From assembly GCA_001643675.2 (NCBI GenBank), contig LSRY02000003.1, forward strand, positions 124,001 through 188,000: DNA of 64,000 nt. The letters run 5' to 3'. The translations under genes were made by a program, and so were the position numbers. The notes beneath the pieces were generated by a model, which was given only the letters and a program-made list of their open reading frames with translations, was not told the origin of the DNA and did not search any database. This DNA comes from Monocercomonoides exilis PA203 (taxonomy: Eukaryota; Protista; Preaxostyla). Of this stretch, positions 711 to 48,286 are shown in pieces; position 1 is the first letter of the stretch, and every line of letters begins with the position of its first letter.

Positions 711-3700
711 CTTCTCAATAAATTTGTTTCGAATAACATATAACACTTTTCATTGATAAAACATTTTGAAATGATCTTTTTAAGAACAACAAAAATCAAC
801 TAATAATAACATCTAACTTTTCAGATAAGAGGCATTTGTATTTCAGAACCTCAACCAACTATTTCCTTTTCAATCTCCATCATAAATCTGTGAGCCTTGA
901 AAGGGAAAGAAAAGAGGAAACAAACACCTTTCTCAATCTCCTTCCCCTCCAAACTCACAAATCGATGAGCACATATTCAAGGTGATCAGAATTGACTTCA
1001 AACAAAAACATCAGAAATTACAAGAAAATGTTCAAAGAAAAACAGTCACCCAAAACAACGCAATGACAAAAAATCTCAGGACAGCAGCCAATATCACACC
1101 ATCATCAAATTGTGCTTTGACAAACAGTGCAACACAAACTCGTCCATGTGTGAAACGAAAACGAAAACAAAAACAAGAAATTAACCTCCTCAATAATAAA
1201 TGCGAATTAAAAATCAGTCTCAACCAAAATAAAGTTGCTGAGCATTCTTTTATCCTTTCCAAGCCATATGCTGCCAATGCTTCAATTGAAAGCATGCTCA
1301 CAGCTGTATGCCCATGAATTCATTTGAAAAACGTTGTTGTATACAAACAAATATAAATATTACAAAAAAAAAAAAAAAAAAAAAAAGAAGCAATGTGCTG
1401 GAAGGAATCAACAAAAAATAAAGATTTTGAAACTCAAACATCTACGCAAGATATATGCCTGTTCAAAAAAAGACTATTTATCACACGCACTCCAACCTTC
1501 ATTGAAGCACTTTTCAAACAAAATAAGATGTGAAATTCTCAACAAATCAAACACACAAAAAATAAATATATAAACACTCAAAAATCACTAAAATCTGAAT
1601 AAACTTCAAATAAACAAAAAACAAAATACATTGCGAAAGCAAAAGCAATCAATAAAAAGATATCTTTCATTTTCATATTTCTCAAATTCATTCTTTCTTC
1701 ATTTCAGTGTATTTTCATTCCCCACATTTTCTTCACTATCCATCCTCTGTTATTTGCACAATCTGCAAAAAAAACTTTTCAGAAGCTTCACCATTCTCGC
1801 ACCTTTTTCTCTTCGTTTAAATCATTTCCCCTTTCATCTCATTTTTTTCTCAATTGCATTCCCCTTCCTTCCCTTTCTTGCCTTCCTTCTCATCCCCCTC
1901 TTCTCTTCGTGTTTCCACCACCTCCACTGCATCTGACATCGTCATCACCAATGCATCCTTCGGGAAGTGCGAAATCAGCTCCCGCTTCACTTCCACAAGC
2001 GTTATCCTCCTCGAAGCCTCCTGCTCCACACACCCTTTCACAACACTCCAAAGCGAAGACCCCTCTGCACCTGCCATGTTCGGCATCTCAAACATCCCAA
2101 TCTTCTCCCCTGCCACCTCTGCTGGATATTCTCCAAACGGGATCTCCAGTGTCACACACTCCCACAGCATCATCCCAATCGAGAATGACACTGACTCCTT
2201 CGTCGCTCCCATCTTCCTGGTCACCTGCAGCTCTGGCGCCTTCCACCTCAGGCACTCCTTTCTGAAGGCATCCTCATCCTCTTCAAACGCAGATGAGGGC
2301 AGAGAGTCATCATCATCATCATCACTGGCAGATGTGACAATAGTTGACGATGAGATTGAGGATGAATCGGAATCATCATCTTGCAATAAATCAGAATGCA
2401 TCACAATGCAGATCACCATGTGTTCTGAGAATAGAACAATGTGCGGACTCAGATTGGCAAGTGACTGAAGTGGATTTTCCATTTCATCAAACGAATGGAG
2501 TGCCCCGTTCGCCACCCAGAACAGGATCTGAGCAGCTGTTTGCTCCCTTTCCTTCAAGGAGCCAATCGGCATCTCCTTTATCTTGTTGCTTTCATGTAAT
2601 AACATGAACAGCGAATCCCTCAGATCCACAATCAGCTTCTCATGTGGAGACGAACAGGCCATTGCATCCACCAGATTCGACATCGATGAGGTGGTTGGAC
2701 ACAGATCCTCTCCTCGAACAAATGTGGATTCAGTGTCTGAAGTGTCTGTTGTTGAAGTGGATGAAATGGATGGTGATGGAGTTCTCTTTCTTGTCTCTTC
2801 TTCTTTTTCCTCTTCCACCTTCTCCAATGCCCAATCAGGGATCTTGTCTGAATCTCTCCCCAAGATGTATTCAGTGGAGTCACTCTCAGACAGAAGGTGC
2901 TCTGACGACTCCGAGTGCCCCAAACTTTTCGCATATACCCTCTTCTTTATTCTCTCTTCATTCTTCTTTTCTGCCTCTCTTTCTGCTCTTCTCCACTGCT
3001 CCTCAGGTGACATCTCCATCGTAACCATCTCAATCAGCTTCGGATCCTTTTTCACTGTGTCATTCACAATCTCTTCCAATTCTTCTGATCTTCTCTTTTG
3101 CTTTTTCCAGCGAACAATAAAAGCAACTGCAATGATCAGAACAATCAATAGCACAATTAAAATAATTGCAATCACAATCCATAGCAAACTTGCTTGATTT
3201 CCTCCCTCAGATATTCTCTCATCTCCTTTTAATTTGGGATCACTTGCATTCTTCAGAATGAATGAATTTGTTGATGAAGGAGATTCTGCATTTCCAAACA
3301 AAACTGAAACACTCACCTCAATTTCATCTCCACAATTGCTGATCAGATCTTTTGTCACACTTCCCTCAACTTCTCTTTCTGATAAAAACCCATTTGAATC
3401 AAAATCGTGTTTTTCAATCTCTTTCTCTTCTCCTTTCCTCTTCACAACTGAGAATGACAAGTTGCATGGAACAAGAAGCAATCCTTTGAATGTAAGCTTC
3501 ATTCTATCTGCCTCTTCTTTTGCTTCCACACTCTCCAGAACAGGAATGAAGAATGATGAATCTCTCTCTGAAGCAATCCCTTCAAAACTGCACCCTTCAT
3601 TCAACATCCAAAGTGAAGTGTTATCCTTCCATCCATCTCCTCCTTTCAAACTCATCACATTCAATGATCCTGAATTTGAACAAATGATGTTTCTTCTCAG

Positions 3701-6700
3701 TGATGTGTATCCTTCAATGGATGGATTATTGTTTTCAAATAACCCCATTTCTATGATTACGCTTCCTCCACTCATTGTTATTCCACCTTCTGATGAATTT
3801 GTGATTGTTGTGTCTTTCATCACCACAGAACTCTTCACAACATCCACAAGAGATCCATCCCATTTGCACATCTCTTCTTCTTTTGCATTCAAATTCTTTT
3901 CATTTCTTTCCTTTAAACTTCCATCAAAAATGCAACTATCCATTTTCACATCCAAACAATTCTCCACTTTCATCAATTTTCCTTTTGTGGTCTTTGAACT
4001 TACTCCGCCTATTGTGCAATTTGCCAAATGAATTGTCTTTCTCAATGACAAGCAAGATATCAGTGATTCCTCATTTCCTTCAACAGTGATATTTTCTGTT
4101 TTGAAATCTTTAATTGTTAATTGTCCACATTCGTTTATATTTATCAGAGAAGTTTTTATTGTTGAATTACAAATCGTTAATGAATCGATTACTGATGGAA
4201 GTTGAGAAGAAAGATACAATGCAGATTCTTGAAGAATTAGATTTGACATTGAACATTCCATAAGTTGTAATTCTCCCTTTGCCATGTTGAAAATGTGAAA
4301 TGGAACGTTTGCAAATACAACATTTTCTCCTTCCGTCAATTGTTTTGTTGTGAATGAACAATTCATTATCTCAAGAATTCCTCCTTCTGGTGATATCAGT
4401 GAATCATGTGAAGAAATGAAATTCGAATCAAATACAAAGTTCACTCTCAACAATGAAACTGTTCCCGCAGTTGAAATCAAAGAATTCTTTTCACTTGTAA
4501 TCTCTGATTTCACTTCAACTTCACAATTTTCTCTCTTCTTCGAACTCAAACTCATCTCCTCCAGATTTATCTCTTCACAAATCACACTCTCTTCAACAAC
4601 GAATATCAGACTCATGATATCTGAAGTCAGATGCATCAGTCCATAATCAATTGAATAACATGGAAGATCGTTTGTTCCACATTGTCTATAATCCAACCCA
4701 CTCGCACTGCTCACAATAATCGTGTCGCTCTGATGGATCGTTATAAATCCAATCAGATCTGTGTCAACTGTATACTGGCATTTATCAATTCCATATATTG
4801 CATTAATTCGTGAATAACGATTCTCTCGAAGATCAAATTGAAATTGGGTTTCATTGATCTGAAATGTGATGTTGAAACATTCAATGAAAATATCATTCCC
4901 CACTCTTGCCGTATTGGCATTGAACTTCATTTTCGCAAACGAAAAATTCAAATCTCCTTTTTCTTTTGTTGTCAAATACACTCCTCCTCCTTTCCCAATG
5001 GTGCAGCTGCATTGACTAATTGTTGAGTCAATCATCTTCATTGATCCAGACAATCCCAATGCGAAGAATATTGCCCCTCCTTTTTCACTATCTTCTGCTT
5101 TGTCTTCTGTGATGTTGCTCGAATTCACAACCAAACAAATCTTTTTCTCGCTCATTGATTCCAAAATGCTCGCTCCATTGTCACTTCTCTTCACTCCTGA
5201 AAATGATGAATTGTCAATATTGAGACTCATTTCCTCACCCACTTTATTTATCTTTGTTGTTGATTCAGATCCTTTGATCAGAAGACATCCGCCGCTTTCA
5301 TTCAACGATTCCACTCGAACATTCATCAAATGACAATCAACTCCAACATCATGAATGACAAAAATACTGTTTCCAACATTGCATGAATCCATCGACAAAT
5401 CATTCACTTCCACAGTTCCTCCAATCGCATCCACAAACACACATTCAAATCCATTGTTCACTCCTGCTTCTGAATGGAATGAACATCCAGTTATCACCAA
5501 ATCTCCACCTTTGTTTGAAATGATTGTTTTGGCTGAGTTGTCAAATCCAGATGTTAGTTGCAGTTGGATATTTGTCAATTCGAGCTGACCATCGTTTTCC
5601 ATGTAATGGTCCAGTTGACTTCCAATTGACTTTTCAAAATTCAATATCGCTTTCACATTCTCTTCTCCCATCTTTACACTCTTTTTGATCTGATAATTGG
5701 ACACATCATATGAATCTCTAATGAAAGTTGATCCTTCAATCTGAATTGCCTTCATTCCAATCTCTCTTTTCATGTTCATCATCCCTTTCCACATTGTGAA
5801 GCACGGTTCTTCCTCACTTCCACATCTTGCAACATCAAATCCACTTGATGAGATAAATATCTCAGTTGAGCTGTATGGAACCAGAAACATGAATAAATCT
5901 TTGTTTGAATGAAAGTTGTCACTTCCAACAAACAAACAATTATCATTTATCATTGATAAGTAATCAAATTTAAATGACTCATTTGTAATGGAAGTATTAA
6001 AATCTTTTGCCAAAATATACATGTTTTTTCCAATGGCTGCATTGTTGTTCTCAAAAATTACACCAGTATCAAATAGAAATGGCTTTTCCTTTGAACAACT
6101 TTGACAATCAAAATATAGGAATCCTCCTTTTCCTTTGCCTGATGAAAGTGAGCAAAATGATGCATTTGTTGATTTAATGATCAAATCTTCTTCATTTTTT
6201 AATATCACTTTTGAAATACCTCCTTCTTCACCGCTTCCAGTGTTCATAATGTTTGAAAAGTTGCTGTTTTCAAATAAAACAGAAGAAGCTATCACAAATG
6301 AAGACTTGATAAATGAACAATCTGCCAAACTGCATCCTTTCAATGTGCAACTTCCACTGGTTGTGGATATCAACGAGTATTGAATGGCTGTTGATGATTG
6401 GATCTCAAATAAACAGTTTTCAAGTTGAAGATTATTACTCGAAGAGATCAGCGTATTCATATTTGGCTCAAATTGACTTGGAATCTGTAACTTCAAAGAT
6501 AACAAGTCGAGTGAAACTGTTGATGAAATAACAGATGAAGTTAATTCAGAATTCCCTTTGATTGTCCCTTTAAAATGAATAGGTCTGTGTTTGGTTTCAT
6601 CTCCCTCATTCACACATCCATCAATCACAAGTGCATTTGTAAATAAATAAATATCTTCAATTGTCCCTTCATCTTTCACTTTCACTTTCCTTTCTCCTTC

Positions 6701-9700
6701 TGTTCCACTTCTGTCAATGTGGTCAATTCCACTTTTCGTCGATTCACATGGGAATATCTCATCTCCACATCCCAATGTATCATGTCCATCTGTCGATACA
6801 GACACTTCCACCCACTTTAAAGAAACAAGAAACACTCGAAGATCCAATTCCCCATATTTCTCATCTTCCCCAACAAATGCATTCCCATCATCCTCGTAAT
6901 CTGAGTAATCAAATGCAAAACGCTCTGTTTTCACACTGGCCACAAGATTCCCACTCTTCACAAACATGTTCTTCCCAACTGTTGCCCTGCACCCAGAAAA
7001 CGATATCGATGAGAGTTGAAATCCTCCTTCATTTGAACTGCAATCCAGATAAATCCCTCCTCCTTTTCCTCCATCGCTGGCATCTTCATTCACGCAGCAC
7101 CCAGTAAACGTGGTGCTGCTCACCGAAAACGTATTGTCAGAGACGGATGAGGCGAATGAGATGCACCCGCCATTGGTGGCGGTCTGTTGGCTCAACTGTT
7201 CTGAGTTGATGTTGGTGATGGTGCAGTTGGTGAGGGAGAGGGAGAGGGCAGGGGAGGTGGCAGAGGAGAGGACACAGCTGGCTGGAGTGGCTGTGGAGGT
7301 GATATCGGTGATGCTGGAGGAGTTGAGGGTGAGGGGAGCGGTGAGGGAGGTGAGGTGGAAGATGCTTTGGCTGTTGAGGGTGAGGCTGGTGATTGCGGTG
7401 TGGTTGAGGGCGAGGGAGCCAGCAGTGAGGAAGAAGAGGGGAGTTTTTATTGTTATGGAGGTTGTTCCGGTGATGGTGGTTGTGTTGAGGTTGAGGGAAG
7501 GGGAGTCATTGGAGAGGTGGAAGAGGATGGGGGTGATTTGATTTGAGGAGTTGTGAGCGATGGCGAGGGCAGAGACTGTGAGGGAGCCCTGGGTCTGTTG
7601 GAAGAGGGCAGACGAGGCAGATGGATCTGGTGAAGAAGATGTTGATGTTGATGATGTTGATTGTGATGACTGTGAATGTGAGTTTGATGGTTGGGGAATG
7701 CCACTGGAGGCAATGGTGGTGGCATCTGTTCCGTTTCCTGTGATTTTTGTATTTGGGGCACGAAATGTGAGAGTCTTTGTGGGAGCGAAAGTGGAGATGA
7801 GAAGAGAAAGGGAGGCATCGCTGAAGGGAGCAATGCATCTAAGGGAATATTCGATGGTGGCACACGGGCTTTGCTGGGTTTTGCCACAGGCATCAACATC
7901 ACTTCCACCATTTGCAACGATTTTGTTCTGGTTGATGATTGGAAGCCAGCCATTATACACAGCATTATCAGCTGTTCCATTATTCCACACTCTTTTTGTT
8001 TGGGTTGTTGAACCACAATTCTCGAATGGGGATTGGGTGATGCTGCTGCCATTGAAAAACACATCATTTCCTCTGCCATTTTTAGCTATATTTCCATCGA
8101 AGAAACAAAAAGTGATGAATTTTACTCCATTCATCCAGGAATAAGTTGCTGTGCAACATAGCCCAGCGCCACCATAGGTAGTTGATGAACTTGTCAACTC
8201 GTTATTAACAAATAGACAATCATCAACCAAAAATTGGATTGGCTTTTCTTTAGGAGGATTATAAAATGTCAAAGAACCATCCGCATGTCCACCAGAATTA
8301 GCAATGCACTTGCATTTGTTGAACAAGAATTGACCGTTTGATGAAAAATTGCCGATATAAAAATACCAACCAGTTCCAACGCAGCTTGTTATTTTGCAAT
8401 TTTTTACTCTATTGTCAGAGAATGTCCAAACAGAATTTGATTGTGGATAAGCTATGCAAGTTGCTCCTCCATGAAATGCCGAACAGTTTGTAAAATTGGA
8501 TTTTGTGATGTCAATTTTTAACAAATATCCGCAAAACAACGCTCCTGCGTGATTACTGGTAGAACAATTGAAAAACGAACAAGAAGTGATTGTGAGATTT
8601 GCATTTGTGCAGTTGACTTTAAGTGCTCCACCCCAATCGTCTCCGCTGTTTGATTCATTCCATTCACACCATTTGAAGATATAGCTATTCAATTCAGCAA
8701 AGGATAATCTTCTTAATTTCTCTCTTTGAGTTTCGGATCCAATATATTTTGCAAGATCATTTGGTGAAGAGCGTGTTTGGTGGAGAAAAGAGGCATTGAA
8801 GGCAGAGAGAGAAGTGGATGGGCTGTTGAGGTTTGGGAGGATGGCACCATCGATGGGGTTGTTGGTGTGGAGGAAGATGGTTGAGTGGATGGAGAGGGAT
8901 GAGCGAAGGGAGAAGGAGTGGATTAAATTGGTGTTGGTGTTGGTGGAAGTGGAAGAAGAGGAAGAAGTGGTTGAGATGAATGAATTGAGTGAGTGTGAGG
9001 GAAGGGATGGAAGAGATGGATGGGATTGGGGAGATGAGATGTTGGAGAAGAGGGTGTTTGAGAGATGGAGATTGAGGTGGATTTTGAGGTGGTGATAGGA
9101 TTGGTGATGGATATGGAAAGGTGAAGGGGAAGAGAAAGAGGAAATCGAAGGGGAAGGAGAAGAAAAAGAAGATGATGAGGATAAGGATGAGAAAGATGAA
9201 GGAGAAGAGGAAAGGGAAGGAGATGGAGAAGGGGATGGGGAAGAGAGGGAAGAAGGAGAAAAAAGGAAAGGCTGGACGAGGGAGACGAATGAGGAGAACG
9301 AGGAGTGGGAGATGGAGAATGATGCAGGGATTGAGGAGTGTGCATCTGTGAGGAGATTGTTTGGGGTGGAGAAGAGGGGGAAGGAGAAGATGGCTGGTTG
9401 GTGGGTGGTGAGGGAGAAGTTTGTGAGGTCGACGGAGGCATGGCCAGAGAGGAAAAGTGGAGATTTTGTTGCTGGGTTGACTTGGCAAGTGGAGGAACAG
9501 ATGGTGGCAGCTGAATGTTGCTGAGAAGTGAGGAGTGGACAAGTACTGAGAGGGATGATGTTGAGATGGGTCACACACAAGGAGGAGTTGATGATTTTTA
9601 GACTTGTTTGAATGCTGTAAATGTAATTGCCAACTGTATTTTCATTTGTTGCTGCATAATTGCCAAAATAATTGTTGTATTCTCTTTTTCCGTTTTCAAT

Positions 9701-9895
9701 GTTGATCTTGCATTTCTGCATCTCCTCGTTCCATTTTTGTTGAATTTGTCTTTCTGCAATGTCTTTACCATTACAACAGTTAACAACAAGTAACAGCAAT
9801 GTGAAAATATTGTATGCAGCTCTCATGTTGGGGAAGTGCCTCACCACAATTGCAGATGCAGGAAAAATGTGGAAATGAAAAGTTATTGCGCCCAA
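711..9895. repeat. Segmental duplication, copy 1 (receptor gene plus ~1.1 kb 3' flank)
   Basis: The sequence from cttctcaataaatttgtttcgaataacat (711) recurs at 38580. Collinear similarity continues through the whole gene to just upstream of the start (~9895 vs ~47765). Confidence 0.95.
1850..9826 (-). CDS. Giant single-pass receptor-like protein: signal peptide, Pmp/pectin-lyase-like beta-helix ectodomain, TM helix, degenerate tyrosine-kinase-like (pseudokinase) C-lobe
   Basis: Intronless ORF. The ATG at 9826 (MRAAYNIFTLLLLVVNCC) matches the paralog start, whereas the ORF-track start at 9895 is TTG. Repeated GGAL/GGGIY/GGAIF and FxxN motifs; TM helix LLWIVIAIILIVLLIVLIIAVAFIV followed by RWKKQKRR; kinase-like LRWKAPE and SFSIGMMLWECVTLEIPF. 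Confidence 0.88.
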   Translation of the reverse strand: MRAAYNIFTLLLLVVNCCNGKDIAERQIQQKWNEEMQKCKINIENGKREYNNYFGNYAATNENTVGNYIYSIQTSLKIINSSLCVTHLNIIPLSTCPLLTSQQHSAATICSSTCQVNPATKSPLFLSGHASVDLTNFSLTTHQPAIFSFPLFSTPNNLLTDAHSSIPASFSISHSSFSSFVSLVQPFLFSPSSLSSPSPSPSPSLSSSPSSFSSLSSSSSFSSPSPSISSFSSPSPFHIHHQSYHHLKIHLNLHLSNTLFSNISSPQSHPSLPSLPSHSLNSFISTTSSSSSTSTNTNTNLIHSFSLRSSLSIHSTIFLHTNNPIDGAILPNLNSPSTSLSAFNASFLHQTRSSPNDLAKYIGSETQREKLRRLSFAELNSYIFKWCEWNESNSGDDWGGALKVNCTNANLTITSCSFFNCSTSNHAGALFCGYLLKIDITKSNFTNCSAFHGGATCIAYPQSNSVWTFSDNRVKNCKITSCVGTGWYFYIGNFSSNGQFLFNKCKCIANSGGHADGSLTFYNPPKEKPIQFLVDDCLFVNNELTSSSTTYGGAGLCCTATYSWMNGVKFITFCFFDGNIAKNGRGNDVFFNGSSITQSPFENCGSTTQTKRVWNNGTADNAVYNGWLPIINQNKIVANGGSDVDACGKTQQSPCATIEYSLRCIAPFSDASLSLLISTFAPTKTLTFRAPNTKITGNGTDATTIASSGIPQPSNSHSQSSQSTSSTSTSSSPDPSASSALFQQTQGSLTVSALAIAHNSSNQITPILFHLSNDSPSLNLNTTTITGTTSITIKTPLFFLTAGSLALNHTAITSLTLNSQSIFHLTSLTAPLTLNSSSITDITSTATPASCVLSSATSPALSLSLTNCTITNINSEQLSQQTATNGGCISFASSVSDNTFSVSSTTFTGCCVNEDASDGGKGGGIYLDCSSNEGGFQLSSISFSGCRATVGKNMFVKSGNLVASVKTERFAFDYSDYEDDGNAFVGEDEKYGELDLRVFLVSLKWVEVSVSTDGHDTLGCGDEIFPCESTKSGIDHIDRSGTEGERKVKVKDEGTIEDIYLFTNALVIDGCVNEGDETKHRPIHFKGTIKGNSELTSSVISSTVSLDLLSLKLQIPSQFEPNMNTLISSSNNLQLENCLFEIQSSTAIQYSLISTTSGSCTLKGCSLADCSFIKSSFVIASSVLFENSNFSNIMNTGSGEEGGISKVILKNEEDLIIKSTNASFCSLSSGKGKGGFLYFDCQSCSKEKPFLFDTGVIFENNNAAIGKNMYILAKDFNTSITNESFKFDYLSMINDNCLFVGSDNFHSNKDLFMFLVPYSSTEIFISSSGFDVARCGSEEEPCFTMWKGMMNMKREIGMKAIQIEGSTFIRDSYDVSNYQIKKSVKMGEENVKAILNFEKSIGSQLDHYMENDGQLELTNIQLQLTSGFDNSAKTIISNKGGDLVITGCSFHSEAGVNNGFECVFVDAIGGTVEVNDLSMDSCNVGNSIFVIHDVGVDCHLMNVRVESLNESGGCLLIKGSESTTKINKVGEEMSLNIDNSSFSGVKRSDNGASILESMSEKKICLVVNSSNITEDKAEDSEKGGAIFFALGLSGSMKMIDSTISQCSCTIGKGGGVYLTTKEKGDLNFSFAKMKFNANTARVGNDIFIECFNITFQINETQFQFDLRENRYSRINAIYGIDKCQYTVDTDLIGFITIHQSDTIIVSSASGLDYRQCGTNDLPCYSIDYGLMHLTSDIMSLIFVVEESVICEEINLEEMSLSSKKRENCEVEVKSEITSEKNSLISTAGTVSLLRVNFVFDSNFISSHDSLISPEGGILEIMNCSFTTKQLTEGENVVFANVPFHIFNMAKGELQLMECSMSNLILQESALYLSSQLPSVIDSLTICNSTIKTSLININECGQLTIKDFKTENITVEGNEESLISCLSLRKTIHLANCTIGGVSSKTTKGKLMKVENCLDVKMDSCIFDGSLKERNEKNLNAKEEEMCKWDGSLVDVVKSSVVMKDTTITNSSEGGITMSGGSVIIEMGLFENNNPSIEGYTSLRRNIICSNSGSLNVMSLKGGDGWKDNTSLWMLNEGCSFEGIASERDSSFFIPVLESVEAKEEADRMKLTFKGLLLVPCNLSFSVVKRKGEEKEIEKHDFDSNGFLSEREVEGSVTKDLISNCGDEIEVSVSVLFGNAESPSSTNSFILKNASDPKLKGDERISEGGNQASLLWIVIAIILIVLLIVLIIAVAFIVRWKKQKRRSEELEEIVNDTVKKDPKLIEMVTMEMSPEEQWRRAEREAEKKNEERIKKRVYAKSLGHSESSEHLLSESDSTEYILGRDSDKIPDWALEKVEEEKEEETRKRTPSPSISSTSTTDTSDTESTFVRGEDLCPTTSSMSNLVDAMACSSPHEKLIVDLRDSLFMLLHESNKIKEMPIGSLKEREQTAAQILFWVANGALHSFDEMENPLQSLANLSPHIVLFSEHMVICIVMHSDLLQDDDSDSSSISSSTIVTSASDDDDDDSLPSSAFEEDEDAFRKECLRWKAPELQVTRKMGATKESVSFSIGMMLWECVTLEIPFGEYPAEVAGEKIGMFEMPNMAGAEGSSLWSVVKGCVEQEASRRITLVEVKRELISHFPKDALVMTMSDAVEVVETRREEGDEKEGKKGKEGECN

Positions 9896-12499
9896 TATAT
9901 TTTTTTGTTTCTAAAACAATAATTCTTATAAAACATTTTTCCAGATGAAATTTGCATTTTTGCATAGAGTTATATTCAAGTGTACCTCAAAATTTGAACT
10001 ATTTTTATTTGATAAGGCTTAATGTTTTCCAGCATTCTATCATCAATTCACTAATATGTTGACAACATTTTATGTTCATATTTTTTCTTTTTTGTAGTTT
10101 TCTTTCTCAAAAATAATTGTCCACTAATTGAAAGTGTGGATATGTTTTTTACGAAAATAATATAAATAATTATCAATTTTCATTTTTAAGGTTTTTTAAT
10201 TTTTGTTAAAGTGCAACTTGCAATTGTAAGATTTCGAAACAGATAAATTCAAGAATTTTAATGATGTTTGAAAAAAGTCTGATGAAAGTTTTGTTTTGAA
10301 TAAAAAAACCGTTCATTAATTTTTTGTTTTTATCAACAGGTCATTATTCACATCACACATTCATTAAATTTCAATGTTTGATTTTTTTTTGTTATTTATT
10401 CCTGTATTCAACGAAAAAAGCAGGAACCCAAAAAGAAACATTTTGCAACATTTTCAAATATATGGAACAAAATTATTTGATTTTCAAAATTTTGTTCCAC
10501 GCAGCGCTTCCAAATATTTTTCTCGACTTTCTCATATTTCTATGTTTTATTTTGTACGAGAATGCAAAAATACAGATATAGCATGAAATACAGGACATCG
10601 CACTTAATTCCGGACAAGATCATTTTCTCAACAACAACTCAAAGAGAAAACTTGATAATATTCCTCAAAACACATCTCATCAATACAAACTCAATTAATA
10701 CGCAAGGCTTTCAAAATAGCTTCATTTGTGCTCAGAAATAATTATTAAGAAATTCAAAGAGAAATAGGATTTGGGTTTCTCCAAAATTTCAATTATTGCA
10801 TTTAACAATATTCAGTCTGCACGAAAATGAATGTCCGGTTTGCCAAATGAGTTAGCTTTATTAAGATATATTTTGAATATCAGCTTAAAAAAAGATCAAG
10901 TTGTTTATTTTAGTCATTCAAAAAACTACAAAGGAGTCATTTTCTCATTGAATATTAACTAAACATTTCCGTTTTTCAAATAACTTCTTTTATTATCAAT
11001 TATCAAATTTAATGCAGTGAGTGCAGTCGCCAAATATTAATTGTCAGTATCTGACAGATGATAAATAAAAATAAAATTCGCAAGAGCTCTGTTTGCAGAA
11101 AAAGAAAAGAAAAGAAAAGAAAAAAAAAAGAAAAAAGAAAATACTTGATTTTAAAAATCAATTTGCACTTCATATCTCCTGCAATAAAAATAAAAAAAGT
11201 TTCTTGCACTAATCTTTTTCATCAAAGGTGGAAGGCCTGTAATTTATTTGTTTATCATTGCATATATAATCGCTCAACAAAAATGTTCGACCTGAAACTC
11301 GCGGCTATAAAAAAAAGACCCATTTGTTAGAGTTTTCAGATTCCTGCAAATCAAATTTTCACGGTGCGTCTTGCCTCACATCCTTATTGCAGCAGACAAT
11401 CTGAATTGCATCTATGAAAAGATAATGCGGCTGAGTCATCCTGCTTTGCTCAGGCAAGAACTCAGAACTTTCGCTTTATTTAAATGACAGAGGAGTTCAA
11501 CAATGTTGGTTTTATAATTAAAACAAGAAGGCATGCTCATGTCTATCCAGGGTTTTAAAGAAATGACATGGGAGGAAATACGAACTTTCAAGCTTTTTTT
11601 GCACAAAGTGCGAAAAAAATTGTCACTCTTGGGTAATTATTATTGAAATCATAACTTTTTTCGGTGTGTTTATTTTTCAAAGGTTGTTTGTCATAGGGAA
11701 GAGTTTTAGTATTTTTTTGTATGTTTTTATCACAACTGCATTAAAAATAAATATTTATGCTCAAATAAAGATGTTGATGTCTTCAATAAACCTTTTCATT
11801 TTTTTGTGCTCTTTTATTGATATAAAAGTAAAAATTTTTGAACCGAAAATTTTAAAAGAAAAATTATGTTTTCAAAAATTATTACCCACTTATAACTTTT
11901 CTAGACTTTATTTGATTTCAGAATAAATTGGATTCTTATATCAATAAACCGGTATCATTGATATCACTGCACAATGTTTTGTGACATGTCGTATTTTTTT
12001 TTTCTAGGTTCCTTTTGTTTTATTTTCAAATTTAATAAATATTTCACATTTCTATCATATTTCTTGTCCCGCTCACAAAACTTCACCAAATTGAAAATAA
12101 TAACATTTTAAAAGTTTTTCTTTTATGCCAGTTGAAGAAGATCAGCTGGTTCAGAAATTTGATTGAAATATGAAATTTTCATTTTTTGATAATTAAACAA
12201 AATGAACTTTTCGAAAAAAATTTGACACATCACATATATTTGGGTAATTCTTTTTGAAAAGTCACAAATGTTTTATTTTCTTATAAATCAATAATTTAAC
12301 ATTTTGCTCAAATTTATGATAACGTACACGAAACTTCACTGACATGGAATCTATTTCTGGATAATGCTATTTCAAACATTCTGAAGAAAATTCGTGAGTG
12401 GATACAGAAATTTGAGCAAAATATGAAATTTTTGATTTATTTGATGATTAATTATTTGCGACTTTTCAAAAAGAGATACCTATTTCAAAAAATGAAACC

Positions 12500-19265: not shown

Positions 19266-22200
19266 ATGTCACAACTTCAATTTCAAGTTGTTTCATTTTC
19301 CAGCGAGGAGCCGTCTAGACAGGCTTCTAGTTTAGCATTACAAAAGCCGGGAAATTCTGGTTGGCAATCCGCTGTGTATGATTTATTATTTATTTTTACC
19401 TCAATTGGTGAATTGATTTTTTTTTATTTAGTAATTGCTCATATCCACAACAACTAACATTGAAGCTAACAGATGGACCGGCTCATTTAACATCATTATA
19501 TATTCTTTCACACGAATCGAAGATAGCATCTCGAATTGAACTTCAAGTAGGCTTACCTAAAAATGGAATTTCTGCTGAAACGCTTGAAGACTGTTCCTTT
19601 ATTGGACTTGGGTATGAATCACTTATTTAAAGAACACATATATCTGTTATTAATGTATTTATGAAGCCATACAAACCTTGAAACAAATGAAGGAAATAGT
19701 TTTAAATACAGTGAATTGAAATCTATAGACTTAAATTCTTACGCTCAATATGTTAGACTCATATTTCATAAAAATTATGTTAATCCCTTTAACACTGCTA
19801 ATCAAGTTGGAATCAGAGCTATCAAATTTGATGGAGAACCAATAGCTGGAAAAGAGGTAAACAATATTCATAATCTTTTTTTTTAAAAGAAACAAATAAA
19901 AAATTATTTTGTAAAATGTGATTAATGATGTTTTTTTGAAAAAAAACAATCAACGTCATTTTAATTTTAGACGCTTGTAAAGGGATTTAAAGCACTTTGT
20001 GCCCAAGCCAGCAGAATGAAAAGCACGACCGCCAAAAAAGTAACTCGAAACGCGGGCGGTGCAGACGTTGTCATGGACGAAGCGACTAAAAAGAAACTGG
20101 AAGAGCTGAACCGAAAGAAAAAAGAAGCAGCAGATGCAGAAGACTTCGATGCAGCGAAGAAGTGGAAGCAGAGCATTGATCGGCTGACTGAGCTATCCGC
20201 CGAGCTGTCAAAATTGGAGCAGATCAAAGAAAAAGCGAAGGCACTGGAAGACTTCGACACAGCAAAGGACGCGAAGATGAAGATCGACCGCCTGAAAGTG
20301 CAGGTCGAGGCGCTGTGCCGGGGAGAAGAGCTGCCTGAAGAGAGGGTGCCTGACCGAAGCCGCGAGGCAAGAACACGAGCAGTCCGTTCTGGTGCTTCTT
20401 TCGACAGCGACGAGACAGAGCGACCGCGAAGGGGCGGGGCGTCGTGGGGCGAGAGAGGAAGAGAGCCTTCTTCTTCTCCTCCGCCTGGTGCTTCAATGGC
20501 CACGCCGTCGCTGAACAGCACATCCAGCCGCATCTCTCCAGACAACGTGGGAGGCGGCCCATCGTTTTCTCCACCTTCCTCTCCTCGTTCTTCTTCCTCT
20601 TCCTCTTCTTCTTCATTTCACCAATCTTCTTCTTCTGCTTCTTCTGCTTATCCAGACACTTCATCTGTGCCAGCCACACGCGCTCCACCGAGGACACGTG
20701 GTGCTCCTCCGCCAAGACGCATTTCTTCACAGCCATCCTCTTCTTCCTCCTCTTCCTCCTCTTCTTCTTCATTTCCTCGTTCAACAGCAGAAGCATCGAG
20801 AGAACCAGCACGGGGAAGAGAAGAGGAAGGAGAGGAAGGAGAACAGGAAGGCGGGGGAATTGAAAGCGATCTGACAGGGCTTAATGAATATGAGAGGCAA
20901 ACAGCTGTGGCTAATAAGTCAGAGGAGGAAGCGGCACACGAGTTTGAACTGCAGCAGCAGAAGGCAAAGACAAATGAAGGTGTGTGAGAATAACAGAGAA
21001 ACGAAAGATTGATTTAGAATTTTTATTTTTTTTTTAACAATTTTTATCTTGTTTCACTTTCATAACAACTTCATTTTCTCTCCTTTTATTTTTCCATCCC
21101 CCCCCCCCCATTTGTTTGTTTGTATTTTCATTGTTTTCATATCTCAACCCATTCCGTTCCAGACGAAGATGCACCTCCGCTCAGCGACAAAGAGCGCACA
21201 GAGTATTCTTCTCTCGTTGCGCAAGTCGGCGAGCAGACGATGGCGCGGCTGCGGAGCAAGAACTGGGCACACCGCGAGATGGGGGTGAACGACATCATCG
21301 ACCAAGTGGCAGCACTGGGCGACAACAGCCCTGCCATCGACCGCATCGCCTCGACACTCAGCGCGTTCTTGCTGAAGATGATCGACGACAGGAATGCGAA
21401 CGTAGCAGCGGGTGTGGTGCAGCTGCTGGAGAGGCTGATTGAAGGCTGCTCTGAAGGAAGAGAGCGCACGGGGCTGGCTGAGGCGGCGCTGGGGAAAGTG
21501 TGCGGGCGGCTGGGCGATGCGCAGAAGCGGGTGAACGAGCACGCGCGAGACTTTGTGCTGTTCTGTGCGCACAGAGCAGTCCTCGGGCCGATGCAGACAG
21601 TGGCGAAGATGCTGAGCTCAGCACAGCCGCCGCTGGCGAAGTGGAAGGAGCACAACGAGCGGATCTCAGTCATAGCAGCAGTTGTGGATGAGAGCGGGGT
21701 GGAGTCGATTGGAGTGGAAGGGTATCTGAAGTATGTGGTGGCACAGATGTCGTCTCCCAACAGCGACGTGAGAGATTTGTGTGTGGCGCAGTTTGCAATC
21801 ATCTATCGGGTGCTGGAAGGAAGAGCGATGGCTGCAGTGGAGGCAGCGAAACTTCCCCCACAGATGATGAAGAAAGTGAAGGAGTCGATCGGAAAAGCAG
21901 ACAGCACCCCTGCTGCTCCTTCTGCAATTGGAGGAGGCATTCCGAGAAGAGGGCCAGGGGGGATGGCAGCATCGCCTGCTGCACCTTCTCCACAGGGAGG
22001 GAGAGGAGGATCGAGTGCCACACCAAACAGCGGAGGATATGGCAGAGGAGCACCAAAAGCAGCAGCAGGAGCAGCCGGAAGAGGCGCAGGCGGAGCTTCT
22101 GCTTCGACTCCTTCGCCTCAGGCAAAACCAAAAGTGACTCCGAAAGTGGCACCGAAAGCGACGCCCAAGCCGGCTGCTGCGAAAGCGCCTGTAGAAGCAC

Positions 22201-22739
22201 CAGGACCAGCGCCGGTGGCAGCAGCAGCAGAAGATGAGATGGGGATGGACGATGAGGAAGAAGAGGAGGATGTGGACTGGACATACTGCGAGTATTGCGG
22301 AGTGACGAATGCGAGCTGGGTGAAAGAGGATGTTATTCAGCACCAGACACACGAGTGTCCTTTCATCACGTCGTGTGACTATTGCGGCATGCTCATCCGG
22401 ATTGACGAGTTCACCGACCATCTTCTGTCACAATGTGAGTCCGGGAAGAAGTTTTCTGAGTGCCCGCGGTGCGGCGAGGCGGTGGAAGAGCGGCTGCTTC
22501 CTGCGCACATCCAGAAGAACAGCTGTCCTCTTTCGAAGGGAGAGGACTTTGCGCGCTGCCCGCTCTGCCATGCGGATATTCCGAACAGCCCCGACGGATG
22601 GGTCAGCCATCTGACGGTGAAGCCGGGCTGTCCAATGAACAAGAGGACGATGAAAAAGTGGGGGAGAGCACAGCAGCCGGCACCTGCGGCAAGTCAGGGA
22701 TCGGGTTTGAGTAGGATACCGAGGTTGTCGAAGAGATAA
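19266..22739 (+). CDS. CEP104: Centrosomal/ciliary-tip protein CEP104 homolog
   Basis: Five phase-compatible exons: 19266-19375, 19432-19611, 19667-19856, 19971-20979, 21163-22739. N-terminal jelly-roll motifs (GWQS..NCSYPQQL, SHESKIASRIE, SELKSI, IFHKNYVNPFNTANQVGI), EDFDxAK coiled coils, a TOG/HEAT region (SKNWAHRE) and C-terminal C2HC zinc fingers. Confidence 0.9.
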
Positions 22740-23396: not shown

Positions 23397-26300
23397 TCAG
23401 ATGTGCGCTTGGAGGATGTTCTTTAAGAATGCTGTGATGACTTGTGAAAAGTGCTGAAAAAGATGGAAAAACAGAATATTATTCGTGGCATTACAAAAGA
23501 GGAAGATTAATTGATAGATTTCTGAAATTTTGATACAAAAACTAAGCAAACCTTAATTTGCACATTCGAAATTGGAGCCGAAGGAACCTTTCGTTTCATC
23601 AGCAAATCCATCTGCTGTGCAGTCAGATTACCTTTCTCCTTCTCCTTCTCACCATCTTTCTCCTTCTCTTTATTTGAAGAAGAAGAAGAAGAAGAAGAAG
23701 AAGAAGAAGAGAGAATTCTTGTGAGCAGAGTCAGAAGTGTGTGCGAAGCCAGCTCCAAAGCGCCAGGCGGTGTTGTGTCGCTCACCACAAACGAAAGCAT
23801 TCCATCTGCCACTCTCGACGAAGGGGTAAAGAGAACACCACGGAAGGGAACACTTCCTGTTTGGAGGGGGGGGGGGGATTAAATTTGATTGGTTGAATGT
23901 GAAGAGAAGATTGAAGAGAATGAATGTTTGATTAGGAAGAATAAAATGAAAGAAATAAAAAAGATAATAATGACAGTAATAATAATAGGCTAAAGGAGCT
24001 TCATCCAAAAAAGTGTTCAAAAGGCAAAAAAATTAAATATCAATTAGAATTCAACACAAAAATAATCAAAATTTGTCTTTTTTTTTTTTCAATCCATTCA
24101 TCAACCAATTCATACCATCTCCTGTGGAATATGCTGAAGACAGCGAGAGGCCGAGCTCTCTGCAAGCCGTGAAGAAAGCCAAATGCGACGACTTCAGGAG
24201 AGACGGATGGGCAAACGGAGGAACAACCACAAACCACCTCTTTTCTGGCTGATGAAGAGAGGAAGAAGAAGAAGCTGAAGTTGAATCAATGATTCTGTTC
24301 TGCTGCAAGTTGTCTCCTTCATTTCCTGCTTTTCCTTCGCCCCCTTTCACAAAACCTGGTCCCGCCAACACAAGATTACTCTTCTCTCCATTTCTCCCTC
24401 TTCCATCTTCACACCCTCCCTCTCCTCCTCCTTCTCCTCCTCCTCCTCCCCCACCCACTGCAAAGCACTCCGCATCCACATCAATCGCGCCCTGTGTCAC
24501 AAACTGCATCCATCTCCACTCCCCAGCCTCTCTCAGCCTCCCTTCCCTCACCTCCACCCCGCACATCCGCACTGCCCCCCACTCGTCCACAAACACCACA
24601 TACTCCACCTGCCACGTGCCCCACAGCCCTTCTCGCCCACACACCGCCCCGACTGCATTAGACGCATCTCTCACAGCTGCCAAGGGAACACCCCGAAGTG
24701 GCGTTAAGACTCCACAGCGCTCAAATTCAGTCACTTTGTTGTGGGTAGGAGAAGAAGAAGAAGATGATGATGATGATGGAAGTGAATAATTTCCATGTGA
24801 TGTATATTTTGTTCTTAAATCGTTAGCTTTTCCTGCTGCATCATCTGAATCAGAATTGTATTCGTCTTCATCTTCATCATCTTCTTCTCTTTCTTCAATA
24901 ATCATGTCATCATCGTCCCCTTCTTCCCCTTCTCCTTCTTCCTCTTCCTCAACTCCATCCAACACATTCTCCCCAAATGCAAATCTCTTTCCTCTCCTTC
25001 CATTTCCTCCTTTCCTTCTCCTTCTCCTTCCCCCTCTCCTTCTCCTTTTCCTCTCTCTCCTCTTCCTCTCCTCCTCATCTTCTTCTCCTCTCCCAGTTAT
25101 CCACTCTCCAATGAACGTAATCTTCGACTCGCCCGTCGGCTTCACAAACATCTCAACAATTGGCTCACACAAAATCTGCTCAGCCGACGGAAACAGCTCC
25201 ACAATTGCGCCTTCTGAACACATATGCGCCAGAAAGTGAGGCCAGGAGCGATAGAAAGAAAGAGGAGGAGAAGAAGAAGATTTCTGTGTTTGTGTTTGTG
25301 TATGTGATTGTGAGTGAGAAAGAGTGTGTAAATGCAGGTGTGATTGTGATTGTGTTGGTGAATGAGGCACAAATTGAGGGAGAGAAGGCGAAGATTTCGG
25401 TGTTTTGGGGATTTTAGGCGTTTTTGGTGTGATTGGGGCGATTGGGGTGATTTGTGTCTTTGAAGAGCGAGCTGTGGAAGGCTGGGGAATGGAAGCAAAA
25501 GAGGAAGAGGATGAAATGAAGGGGAAACGAGGAGAGGAAGAAGGGACGGGGTCGAGGAAGGAAGTGGAGGAAGAAGAAGGGAAAGAAGAAGAAGAAGAAG
25601 AAGAAGAGGAGGAGGAGGAGGAGGAAGAGGAAGAGGAAGAAGATGAAGAAGAAGATGAAGTTGATTCGCGAAATGGAGAGAAGAGATTGAAAGATGAAGA
25701 GTCGCAGAATGAAATGATTGAAGGGCACAGAGGAACAGTCGACAAGGAACGAGGATCAAACACTTGTTTCGGTGCATTCTCTGGTTTCTTCTCCACTTCT
25801 CCTTCTTCTCCTCCCTCTCCTCTTTCTCCTTCTTCTTTTATTTCACCTTCTTCTTCTTCTTCTTCTTCTCCCTCTCCCTCTCTCTTCTTCTTCTCTTCCT
25901 GCTCAAACTCCAGAAATGCCAAGTTGTCCAATCCAAGTGCTTCTGCCAGAATTGGCACAAGAACTTCTTCCAACGCCGTCTGATTCGCTTTTATCTGCGC
26001 CACTCGATCTCGGTGCTTATGTGAAACACCCTTTGTGCTATTCTTGTCTTCTTCTCCTTCTCTTTCTGTTACTCCTTCTCCTTCTTCTTTATCTCTGTTC
26101 TGAATATTTCTGTCTGTTTCACTGTTATCATTCACAACACCATCTTCTTCATTTTCTTCCTTTTCCTTTTTCCCTTCTCCTCCTTCTCCCTCTCCCTCTC
26201 CCCTCATCATCTCCTCCTGCTCCTTCAACAGCCTCTCCATCTTCTCCTTCAGCACCCTCTTCTCCTCTTCCTCTTCTTCTCTCTCTTCTGCTGCTGCCAA

Positions 26301-29300
26301 TGTCAACATCGCTGATGACAGCACCACATCCTCCATCTCCATCTCCAGCTCCTCCAGCGCCTGCTCCACACACCCCTTCACCCAGCACACCACATCTCCT
26401 CTCCGCCCAACCTCATCGTCCAGCCGAATCATCACTCTTTCTGTCTGCGCCGCCCTCGACAGCAGCCGCGCGATGGCCGAAGGGACAAGAGAAGGGTCGT
26501 ACAGGTCGTAAATAGAGGGCATCGTGTTCACGTCGGCCGAGGTGAAGATCCGCTTGCTGCCAGAACGGGTGCCCATTGCGCGGGAGAGGAGAGGAGAGGC
26601 AGCGCAGAGGGGAATGTTCAGATCAGCTGATAGAATCACATCAGACTCAGACACCACACTGCTGTACATAACAGAAGGGCGGTTTTTGGTGTATGCTTTG
26701 AGCTTGGCGAGGGCAGCAGGGGAGGAAAGGAGAAGAGAAGAGAGAGAAAGATGGGGAGAAAGATAGGAGCAGGCTTCGGGGACGATGATGCGGAGGCGGC
26801 TGTCGATGTTGGAGATGGGGCCATCAGAACGAAGAGAGCAGATGATGGAGGAGGGAGTTGTGGTGGATGAGGATGAGGAGGAAGAGGAGGAGGATGATGA
26901 CAAAGAAGTAGAAGAAGAAGATGTTGATGATGAAATAGGAGTTGGTGTGTGTGAACGAGAAGTCGGACCTAAATAGAAATAACAAAATAAATAAATAAAT
27001 AAAATAGATTAATAAATAAGCACACAAGCACTGTTCAAAGGAATTGAAGTGATTGCAGAAGCAGACAATGAAGAGGTAGAAGAAGAAGAAGCAGAAGAAG
27101 AAACAGACATCATCAGCTTCTTTGCGTAAGTGAGGACAGCTTGTGGGAGAGGGAAAGGAGAGACGAGGATGACATCCACATGAGGATCACGCAGATCAAG
27201 CAGAGACGAAATGTCTGACTGGAGCTGAGGAAACAGATGGAAAAGCACATCTGAAGGGGAAGGAACACGACTTTTGGAGAAAGAGGATGAAAGAGAAGAA
27301 GAAGATGTTGATGATGATGAATTGCTTGAGCCTTTCAAATGATAAAACAACGAGTCAGCAGAAGCAAAGCCCTCTGCTTCAGGCAGTTCCAACTGTGCAT
27401 ACTTCTCGTTCTGCAGTGCCATTCTTATGCTCTTCTCACTCACTGCTGCCTTCCCCTCTGCGCCCAGCCCTCCGCCCGCCGTGTCCTCCACCACATTCGC
27501 CACCCACCTCTCGAATTCTGCCTTCTCCACGGAACAGCTCGCATCCACAGACATTCTGATCCGCTCGTCCCACCCAACCGACGGCAGGTGCACATGCACC
27601 CGGCGCGTGTGCTGCATCTCCCGCCAGCTCGTCTGCAGCGCAACAGCCAGCTCTCTTCTCCTTTCTTCTCGCACTGCCATCCGCTGCACTCGCTCCTCCA
27701 CAAACGCCTTCCGCACACAATAGTCCCTCCACCCCTTCTGGATGACAGCTGCTGCCTGGCCCTTGGGACAGTACCGGAGATACTGTCTTCTCGCCCTCCA
27801 CATCCGAAACACCGACTGAATAGCCACCGCTGCCTTCGCCTCGCAGTCGCCAAACTGGAAGCGCCGGCCGACTGAATGGAGAAGAGGCTCAATCTCATCG
27901 CGGTTGACGACAAGAGACAGAATCTGGCTCGTCTTCAGACGCAGAGAGGGTGGGAGTGCACGCACAGCCTCCCAGGAACGAGAAGAAGAAGAAGAAGAAG
28001 AAATATTTCCTCCTTCCTTTGCCCTCTCCTTCCCTGCCTTCCCTGGCACATACACAAAGTCGTCGCTGGTAGCGAGCTGAACCACTTTCTTCCCGCTCAC
28101 AAAGACCAAATCGATTCCATTCTCCACACACCACCACTCCACCTGCTGCAGCACCGCCTCTATGCGCTGCCAGTGCTCGCCAAATGCGCGGGAGAAGGAG
28201 GAATATTCGGGTGTGTCCCGCACAACCGCCCCGCGCCGCACAATCAGATGGTGTAGCGAATACTCGTCCAGCAGATCGTCAAAGCTGCGAAGTGCAGTTT
28301 GGGCTGCAGAGGAAGAAGAAGAGGCAGAAGAGTCGTTGTTTGGCAGAGGAGCATTTGAAGTGTTGGAGAATGAGTCTGAGGTTGCTCCGCGATGTGCTTC
28401 TGCTGCTGCTGCTGCTGTTTCGTTTTCAGCACGGCGCCTTCTTTCATTCTCTTCCTCTTCCTCTCTTTCTCTTTCTCTTTCTCTTTCTCTTTCACTCAAG
28501 CTGTTCTCACTTCGTGCAGAATTCGTCTGCCTTTCTCCAGCTGTCCACTTTCTCATCGCTCTTCTCTTCAGCATTTGCTCAGTCACATGCGGATGATACG
28601 AATGGTCTGGCAAGAGCGATCGCAAAGGAGCGTCTGTCCCAATGGGCGTGGTCAGATCAAGTATTCCTTCGCCCACAAGAACTCTTCTATCACCCTCTGC
28701 ACTCAGCTTTTTGCGTGCTCGTCTCGTACCGTCGGGAAACACCACCGTCTCAAATTGCTCTTCCAGCGGATGTGCAGTCGCCATTTGCGTTTGCAGTGAG
28801 GCCATTTTGTCTATTCCAAGTGCAATCGTAAGATCTTTGGGAGTTTTCAGAAACCCTCTGTCTGCCAATGATATTGCTGACATTGATGCCATTGCGGGAG
28901 AATACACAGATGTTGGCTGATTGGAATCCGCAAGCGGTAATCCCCCTTTCAAGAGAGTTGTTTCTTTGGCTCCAGGCATTTCTTCCTCGCGAAAGCGAAC
29001 ATTTGGATTATTTCTGACTTTTGATGGAACAATTGCAAGTGGTGTTGTTGTCTTTGTTTTATTAATCTTTCCTTCTGGTGCACGGCCAACGCGCCGTGGT
29101 GCCGAGCATCGCCGTTGTTTCTTTATGTGAAATCGTTCTGAAAGGATTGATTGAGCATCAGGATTTCCAAGAACACGCGAAGTAATTTGATCTTGCTTTT
29201 GATTTCTGATTAAGGCCGAATACGAAACAAACGAGCTTTGTTGTGCAGTTAGTGATGCAGGAGAATTTTCACGTTTTGGACTTAGAGAACTTGTAGAATT

Positions 29301-37013: not shown

Positions 37014-37174
37014 TGCATAGTCGATTTGTTTGTGAATCTTTAGTGAAACGGGAACAAAATAATGTGTTGTTTTGTTCGATACAAATAATTATTACATGCA
37101 AACAAACACAAAGAATGAAACAAATTTGATAATTCTTTGAAAAAGACACTCACAATAATATTTCCAAAAATTAC

Positions 37175-38161: not shown

Positions 38162-38255
38162 TTATTTGCCTTTTTCAACTGATGAAATATTCGATCGAAA
38201 AGAAATAAAAAAAGTTGAAAAATAATCGTACTTAGAATTATGGGCTTTTGAAGGG

Positions 38256-47765: not shown

Positions 47766-48286
47766 ACTATTTAAAATTTTAGTTTTAGAAATTTATAAGA
47801 ATTCTTGCATTTTTGAAAAATTCAATGATTTGTTCCAAAAATTTTCTGCTTCGAATAACTTCAATTCTGACATTCTCTTGCAAAATAAAATATGTAAATA
47901 CAAAAAAGTTGAGAAACATTTTAGAATGAACTGTGTGGTACAAAATTCATCAAACATAAAATTTTGTACCAAGTAATTATTATTAAATTTTTGTGTAAGA
48001 CAATGAACGAAGATTTTTTCAACATTTGTGTCAAATACGTCCTTTTTATGCAATATTTGTTAATTTTACACTTTTCATTGATATTGAACAGTTGTGATAA
48101 AATTCTTTCTGCATATATTTGAAATTTGTATAGTAAAAATCAGAAATATCCAATACAATATAAAGTTTATTTATGCATTTTATAAGTGGATATTTTAACC
48201 ATTAAAAAAAACTTAATAATAATTTGAGTTTCATTTTGGTTGATTTTATCAGAAAATTAATTAGAATATTTTCGAGTTTGAAATTT

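Follow-up and report, generated by a model that had tools for sequence, protein, structure and literature searches.

Why should two giant genes of one genome be nearly alike over long stretches, yet sharply different in a segment close to their N termini? The question is raised by genes A and B of the commensal gut flagellate Monocercomonoides exilis, the two very long minus-strand open frames, 38 kb apart, in a stretch of 64,000 nucleotides (nt) analysed here as the window (C25:124001–188000 of the 82.3-Mb, 101-contig assembly that we searched). Gene A occupies window positions 1850–9895 on the minus strand, with an open frame of 2,681 amino acids (aa) and an annotated model of 2,658 aa that begins at the ATG at 9826; its paralogue B lies at 39676–47697, also on the minus strand, with an open frame of 2,673 aa. 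A preliminary description of the locus, made from the sequence alone, proposed a ligand-binding beta-helix, diversified by cassette exchange or gene conversion within otherwise near-identical receptors. We find that the A/B pair is one local, and partly overstated, instance of a layout that is family-wide. The reading that we favour, with a probability of roughly 55%, is that A and B are a gene-conversion patchwork in which homogenization of the flanks halted at heads that already differed.

Old and young blocks in genes A and B

The two proteins are 83% identical over 2,417 residues (BLASTP). Within A aa 380–590, which align to B without a gap, 76 of the 211 residues differ (64% identity), and in 50-aa windows identity is 52–70% between A aa 368 and 592, compared with 82–98% directly outside. 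The scaffold motifs first reported from this segment (WCEWN, GGAL, TITSCSF, GTGWYF and YGGAG) are kept in both proteins, and the residue swaps quoted with them are all present (DDW/SSN, TSNHA/SYWNG, TCIAY/GYVGW, SCV/NWC, HAD/VSA, TFY/AIA and LCCTA/IYFHS). The phrase ‘otherwise near-identical’ is accurate for the sequence directly beside the segment but overstates the likeness of the genes as a whole, given the overall figure of 83%, an unrelated 5′ end and further old blocks, with identity drops to 64–78% at aa 1243–1342 and 1690–1830 (50-aa windows).

A change-point fit to the nucleotide alignment delimits a diverged head block at window 7950–8775 (minus strand; A aa 374–649), with 24.7% mismatches inside and 6% on either side; the gapless alignment places its counterpart in B at 45796–46623 (minus strand; aa 359–634). 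Breakpoints had been anticipated at both edges of the segment. The 5′ edge is indeed sharp, falling at 8775 (aa 374) in all change-point models, but the 3′ edge is fuzzy: the model preferred by the Bayesian information criterion puts it at 7950 (aa 649), and near-equal models spread to aa 689–729, which would carry the block as far as ~7710. Upstream is a block recently common to both genes (8776–9736, minus strand; A aa 54–373), in which synonymous divergence (dS) is 0.02–0.2. Downstream is a homogenized block (7145–7755, minus strand; aa 714–917) with an A–B dS of 0.09 and a family-wide dS of 0.22.

Sliding Nei–Gojobori estimates extend this alternation along the gene. The A–B dS is 0.02–0.2 in aa 54–353, 714–893 and 2215–2665, rises to 0.7–1.1 in aa 384–683, and is 0.5–1.2 in aa 1254–1463, 1644–1973 and 2125–2214; ~45% of the gene, not the head alone, stands at background divergence. 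The head block is ~825–1,065 nt of anciently diverged DNA in younger surroundings, and it is one of several such blocks. The many synonymous changes first noted in the segment are borne out, as 79 of 167 synonymous sites differ in aa 380–645, compared with 18 of 206 in aa 262–339 and 720–900 together (Fisher P = 1.5 × 10−17), and synonymous divergence is ~8-fold higher in the head block (dS 0.72–0.85 versus 0.09).

These values bear directly on the idea that the heads diverged by point mutation under diversifying selection after a recent duplication. The differences do fall on an exposed, periodic and family-variable stripe (described below), on which the ratio of non-synonymous to synonymous divergence (dN/dS) is ~0.5, compared with 0.18 for the remaining sites of the head. 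Selection at the protein level cannot, however, produce an ~8-fold rise in dS over the flanks, and dN/dS does not reach 1 even where the most variable sites are singled out: it is 0.34 between A and B in aa 380–590 (pairwise range for the head, 0.26–0.34), and on 36 codons picked as variable it is 0.44 for A–B and 0.50 as the family median. Saturation of dS would, if anything, raise these head ratios. Values near or above 1, as the preliminary description had expected, were thus absent from the segment and from its most variable sites. Because dS is raised ~8-fold and dN/dS is well below 1, we read the head as old DNA and not as the product of fast protein evolution, and we consider the selective history very improbable.

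The mosaic could in principle have been made by a chimeric join of repeat copies in the Nanopore assembly, as the family has more than 1,000 copies and some of its blocks are at least 95% alike. Against this, independent short-read contigs match A-unique stretches exactly (8132–8232, 8348–8444, 8592–8682 and 9628–10306) at a single-copy depth of 33–41, both frames are open for ~2,670 codons, and the same mosaic pattern occurs family-wide; an assembly artefact is hardly credible.

DNA homology between the genes extends over window 711–9902 in A and 38580–47772 in B. It takes in ~1.1 kb of non-coding 3′ flank at 90–99% identity; the flank of A (711–1849, without strand) is common to B (38580–39675, 93%) and to about six genes of a sub-clade (80–92%). 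The 5′ limit of homology lies inside the coding region, at about aa 35–50, and the first ~35 codons and the promoters are unrelated. Young A–B blocks are 94–100% identical. When compared with 118 annotated paralogues, B is the nearest relative of A only in aa 701–1250 and 2215–2664, a comparison that excludes aa 60–370, where the annotated model of A alone gives coverage; from about aa 1254 to 2120, B is at family background with respect to A.

Predicted fold and variable stripe of the head

Structure prediction with AlphaFold2, given an alignment of 28 family copies of A aa 336–722, returned a model that is confident for approximately A aa 380–565 and is all-beta with a repeating strand pattern. 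Mean confidence per ten-residue block (predicted local distance difference test, pLDDT) is 90–97 for A aa 386–495 and 65–81 beyond. A Foldseek search of the model against the Protein Data Bank (PDB) gave no match at E ≤ 0.001. With the exhaustive structural aligner VIA-align, the recognized entries among the top 50 are all right-handed parallel beta-helices (Z 13.4–16.7), mostly at 3–4 Å root-mean-square deviation over 200–240 aligned residues and at 7–16% sequence identity. They include tailspikes, polysaccharide lyases, polygalacturonases, alginate epimerases and the adhesin PfbA. On the strength of this model, the head block is predicted to fold as a right-handed parallel beta-helix. The match in fold to pectate-lyase-like glycan binders such as phage tailspikes, polysaccharide lyases and PfbA (Z 13–16.7) comes with an identity of only 7–16%, and a shared fold shows no function.

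The suggestion that this helix is Pmp-like holds in part. Chlamydial Pmp proteins are built of GGA[ILV]/FxxN beta-helix repeats (PMC10715098), and the rungs of the M. exilis head similarly carry GGA and FxxN-like strands, six rungs being anchored on G-G-A; the whole A protein contains 6 GG[AG]x and 13 FxxN motifs. The parallel beta-helix and the motifs therefore stand as proposed, but the Pmp family profile PF02415 has no match to the head at E ≤ 1. Unlike the Pmp autotransporters, moreover, A ends in a membrane helix and a kinase-like tail, with no beta-barrel, as in a eukaryotic type I protein. The nearest protein-language-model clusters to the head are parabasalid hypothetical proteins, some with PF02415, which is a lead only.

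To describe variation along the helix, we aligned six successive rungs on G-G-A and took the family entropy at each offset. Entropy is ~0 bits at offsets 0 to +2 and 1.2–1.35 bits at −3 to −1; it then reads 1.39 bits at +4, 0.60 bits at +5, 2.09 bits at +6 and 1.76 bits at +7, and it is below 1.1 bits at most other offsets. The succession of high (+4), low (+5) and high (+6) values is that of a strand with varied outward and conserved inward residues. Sites that differ between A and B are also those that vary across the family (mean entropy 1.53 versus 0.50 bits). In sequence register, the head thus presents itself as a conserved scaffold with a varied, exposed stripe beside the GG motif, and the variable residues occupy equivalent rung positions there, as had been proposed. 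We infer that the head is a ligand-binding surface, with glycans as the probable ligand.

Gene conversion and truncated head copies across the family

A search of the genome with the head of A gave 1,283 first-look candidates, in keeping with a family of more than 1,000 copies that has over 1,200 heads and includes hundreds of intact full-length genes. The best 150 of the 1,283 are 62–73% identical to A at the protein level, with B among them at 66%; the head of B has no protein match above 75% genome-wide. For the 165-nt variable core, the closest copy of A's sequence in the assembly is 84% identical (89% over 119 nt), and that of B's sequence is 85% identical. Because the core matches reach only 84–85%, every assembled locus is excluded as a recent source of A's or B's head.

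The two heads are no closer to each other than to those of other members, their divergence (dS 0.72; proportion of non-synonymous differences, pN, 0.21) equalling the family median (dS 0.90, pN 0.20). Among 11 full-length genes on different contigs, dS is 0.90–1.15 in aa 380–719 and 0.22 in aa 720–900. Summed DNA word depth over window 7061–7651 is ~1,000–1,400 times that over A-unique stretches, a ratio that is not a copy number. The contrast in dS, together with this word depth, indicates that the block beside the head is kept alike family-wide and the head is not. The Ser/Thr-rich stretch at 7061–7651 (A aa 748–945) scarcely differs between family members and may act as a recombination handle or be constrained at the nucleotide level.

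Recombination within the head is supported by the pairwise-homoplasy test (PHI; permutation P < 0.001, for all 28 copies and for the full-length genes alone) and by a GENECONV-like scan, in which the longest run had 142 matching polymorphic sites in a row and the seven highest-ranking pairs reached a global permutation P < 0.003. The head tracts measure 93–204 nt at 98–100% identity, compared with 73–90% on either side in the same pairs and a median of 71–74% for family pairs at the same places; tracts of 120–204 nt at 99–100% identity stand in backgrounds of 77–80%. Three of the top tracts involve locus L002, a 2,914-aa frame that shares 141–153 nt at 99.3% with the truncated copies L003 and L025. 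Truncated and full-length copies thus share recent patches. All conversion tracts found are 40–204 nt long. The best run involving A, 70 nt within conserved sequence, is of borderline significance (global P = 0.06), and B has no run among the 40 most significant pairs of the scan. Particular donors of mid-gene patches in A were not supported: the best other paralogue per 50-aa window belongs to the upper tail of the family distribution at the protein level, with z mostly 1–2 and the second-best paralogue close behind.

The genome also has a large store of heads without a receptor. Open frames of less than 1,000 aa account for ~119 of the 150 best head matches, compared with ~8 of 150 for a mid-gene query, and ~100 of these ~119 short-frame copies are located at C25:1.49–2.51 Mb, often as mirrored pairs with identical scores. 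In this ~1-Mb array, the loci examined were L003–L005, L008, L010–L012, L014, L017–L019, L022–L026, L028 and L030. Across 19 truncated loci, homology to A starts at aa 260–343 and has recurrent ends at aa 645–661, 721 or 779; at the 3′ side the copies pass into AT-rich non-coding DNA, some of it common to several copies. Mid-gene (aa 1254–1463) and C-terminal queries match almost only frames of 2,000–4,400 aa, so that truncation is peculiar to the head. Transposon capture as the origin of the short copies was considered and rejected, as the surroundings of four copies (±1.5 kb) contain no terminal inverted repeats, only GAA-type low complexity. Close relatives of A and B at C25:212174–216964 and C24:321204–325997 have frames of only 2,004 and 1,990 aa; with a head-to-C-terminus distance ~2 kb shorter, they look like an internal-deletion variant of the ectodomain.

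The truncated copies have remained readable. All 17 non-redundant copies are open across aa 343–645 at a median nucleotide divergence of 23.5%, and the expected chance of staying open under substitutions alone is 0.4–2% per copy. Their dN/dS is 0.28, compared with 0.26 for full-length genes. The loci behind these figures were, however, selected for high protein similarity, and copies that took over existing differences from separate parent genes would likewise have a low dN/dS.

Programmed somatic switching, similar to antigenic variation, would have expressed genes copy their heads from silent truncated donors while a culture is growing. It would also leave readable partial copies that cover the head and keep conserved ends, and recent short tracts that join such copies to a full-length gene. 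At A, however, DNA contigs from the culture carry no alternative head letters (although contigs drop rare variants), the genome has hundreds of intact full-length genes, and RNA word depth, a weak measure, suggests that many members are transcribed at once. The relation to the host is commensal and is not known to involve immune pressure. We consider somatic switching highly improbable.

Under the history that we favour, homogenizing conversion, either between the neighbours A and B or from close relatives, would have run through the conserved flanks; it would have stopped where the heads were already too different, and both heads would be left behind as old, distinct lineages. Across the family, the conserved blocks beside the head would likewise be kept alike, and the head itself would be exchanged only in ~40–200-nt patches among full-length genes and the truncated head-only store. 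In the A/B pair, recently shared stretches (dS 0.02–0.15, including the 1.1-kb 3′ flank) alternate with background-level stretches (dS 0.5–1.2), and the flagged segment is the most conspicuous of the old stretches because it is the membrane-distal head with the variable exposed stripe of the family. Support for the patchwork comes from the absence of head donors, the 5′ limit of homology inside the gene and the low–high–low dS seen family-wide. In which direction, and in which order, these events took place at A and B is what we infer.

Another history would make A and B recent duplicates, one head of which (aa ~374–649/729) was later replaced through one conversion event, the donor being a truncated head-only copy or another family member, with short patches later blurring the likeness to the donor until it was erased. 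The 3′ flank, limited to a sub-clade of ~8 genes at 80–93%, points to a real duplication, and the same sub-clade comprises the closest C-terminal relatives of A, yet their listed heads are at the background of 66–68%. The diverged block spans the same region as the truncated copies, with its sharp 5′ edge at the end of their conserved 5′ block; the best head matches of B are truncated copies in the C25 array; and tracts are exchanged between truncated and full-length copies. A single overwriting nevertheless lacks a donor, the best being 84–85% over the 165-nt core compared with 94–100% in young A–B blocks; the tracts seen span 40–204 nt, not ~800 nt; and the ~45% of the gene at background divergence reaches beyond the head. 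We regard such an overwriting as possible but doubtful. Both histories are forms of gene-conversion mosaicism. Because neither variable core has a partner above 85%, we speak of a gene-conversion patchwork and not of a demonstrated cassette swap. Of the original proposal of cassette exchange or gene conversion, the short conversion tracts in the segment remain, and the exchange of a whole ~230-codon unit from a recent donor does not.

Block trees speak for the patchwork: in those of aa 270–372 and 701–920, A and B are sisters on short branches, and in the tree of aa 380–590 they sit on long branches in a star-like topology with weak internal support. Several points weigh against it. The approximately unbiased (AU) test does not reject monophyly of A and B in the head (P = 0.205), and we do not claim the incongruent per-segment trees that had been predicted. 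As their sisterhood is not rejected, the case rests on branch length and dS, not on topology. Confinement of the 1.1-kb non-coding 3′ flank to a small sub-clade agrees equally with a recent duplication of the whole gene and a later overwriting of head and mid-gene. The diverged block (aa 374–649/729) occupies the same interval as the truncated copies (aa 335/343 to 645–661 or 721), as would be expected had a truncated copy been the donor. Finally, the permutation nulls ignore rate differences between sites, and the family analysis covers 30 loci of ~3.7 kb, all of them best matches to the head of A, plus the window.

Receptor architecture, expression and related systems

The layout of A is that of a type I receptor. 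A predicted signal peptide (9767–9826, minus strand), consisting of Met24 and the hydrophobic run that follows it, precedes an ectodomain of ~2,200 aa, a single hydrophobic membrane span (3110–3187, minus strand; aa ~2237–2262) and a kinase-like tail of 419 aa; the span at aa 2237–2262 is the only one. In the reading favoured here, B has the same plan, and both ectodomains are made of beta-helix modules. In the tail, a kinase C-lobe-like stretch (1976–2263, minus strand) matches PK_Tyr_Ser-Thr (PF07714) at 23.7 bits, just above the cut-off of 23.1, over profile positions 164–258 (the C-lobe) only, and matches to TKL kinases in the PDB are weak (E 0.001–0.01). Around this stretch, the tail (window 1850–3100) contains acidic and Ser-rich low-complexity inserts. 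A motif search of the tail returned no GxGxxG, VAIK, HRD or DFG, and of the kinase motifs only APE. Judging by these motifs, the tail of A is probably a pseudokinase, and the kinase part looks degenerate, at least in A.

Homologues of A number 584 proteins at E ≤ 10−10. The best 120 of these are all from M. exilis, at 54–85% identity, and most of the 120 have PF07714 on record. By this measure, A and B are members of the giant ‘tyrosine-kinase-like’ (TKL) receptor-like expansion of M. exilis. Pfam detects no family in the head or the remaining ectodomain of A, and the head is clean even at E ≤ 1. Public models of the family often begin inside or after the head (the model of B has 2,160 aa, compared with its 2,673-aa open frame), and among the 120 relatives listed (P0001–P0120) the complete head is included in just two, the model of A itself (P0001) and P0019, so that databases under-annotate it.

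Contigs of three metatranscriptome runs served as expression data. RNA contigs match A-specific stretches without any difference at 8197–8377, 8476–8682 and 9603–9841, and because these stretches are unique to A, the gene is transcribed. Upstream of A (9819–10400) there is almost no RNA at a DNA depth of ~40; transcription is apparently low-level and starts near 9841–9895. Family-conserved blocks have an RNA word depth that exceeds that of A-unique parts by a factor of hundreds, which hints, as a weak measure, that many family members are transcribed together.

Surface families that are diversified by segmental conversion from stores of partial copies include the mosaic variant surface glycoproteins (VSGs) of Trypanosoma brucei, vlsE/vls of Borrelia, msp2 of Anaplasma, pilE/pilS of Neisseria and the pseudo-V genes of chicken immunoglobulins. 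Such diversification is known mainly from immune-evading pathogens and from vertebrate antibody genes. As in the VSG, vlsE, msp2 and pilE systems, the M. exilis family has a variable region between conserved blocks, short-tract mosaics and many partial copies that cover the variable region and have conserved ends. Recent transfer between store and expressed gene is suggested by the tracts common to L002, L003 and L025, which may have run in either direction, but not for A or B, whose best matches reach only 84–85%. Unlike those systems, M. exilis has hundreds of intact genes and no single expression site shown, and is without demonstrated one-way flow, silencing or somatic switching; it is a commensal, and the carriers are receptor-like proteins with a signalling-type cytoplasmic tail.

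We offer only tentatively, as a conjecture that may well prove wrong, that M. exilis has a germline, possibly somatic, system of receptor diversification, in which ~1 Mb of readable head-only cassettes would patch the stripe of hundreds of co-expressed genes, with the flanks as homogenized recombination handles. Its product would be a repertoire for innate recognition, of bacterial glycans for instance. The genomic layout is the same as in the systems above, here found on receptor-like signalling proteins of a commensal gut flagellate, and it would point to recognition of a diverse outside world, not to evasion. The A/B pair offers a clean place to measure the process, with one sharp breakpoint, unique flanking genes and a transcribed gene.

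The protein tyrosine kinase/TKL expansion has been reported as the largest gene family of the M. exilis genome (PMC6759080), and it overlaps the unclassified repeats of that genome (PMC8767320). In both papers, the family is described by kinase annotation and copy number only, and neither they nor a full-text literature search yielded anything on its ectodomain, beta-helix head, truncated copies or gene conversion. The tail of A differs from the TKL kinase annotation in that the catalytic motifs are absent. Much of what has been listed as ‘unclassified repeats’, and as the ‘largest gene family’, of this intensively studied genome gains content from the findings reported here.

The remaining genes of the window are ordinary eukaryotic ones, encoding a CEP104-like protein at 21120–22739, an IQCH-like protein at 24066–26903, a Myb protein at 32030–34468 and a PI3-kinase at 49922–55123; these neighbours are single-copy, and the open reading frame at 56544–61973 has no relation to the A/B family. 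The PI3-kinase is split over adjacent open frames (49922–53296 and 53351–55123), of which the first encodes C2 and the beginning of PIK, and the second encodes the remainder of PIK and the catalytic domain; the ~55-nt gap between them is probably a short intron or a frameshift. A near-perfect inverted repeat at 37169–38167, with 439-nt arms that are 98% complementary, a 121-nt spacer and AT-rich units of ~22 nt, sits ~400 nt beyond the boundary of A/B homology at 38580.

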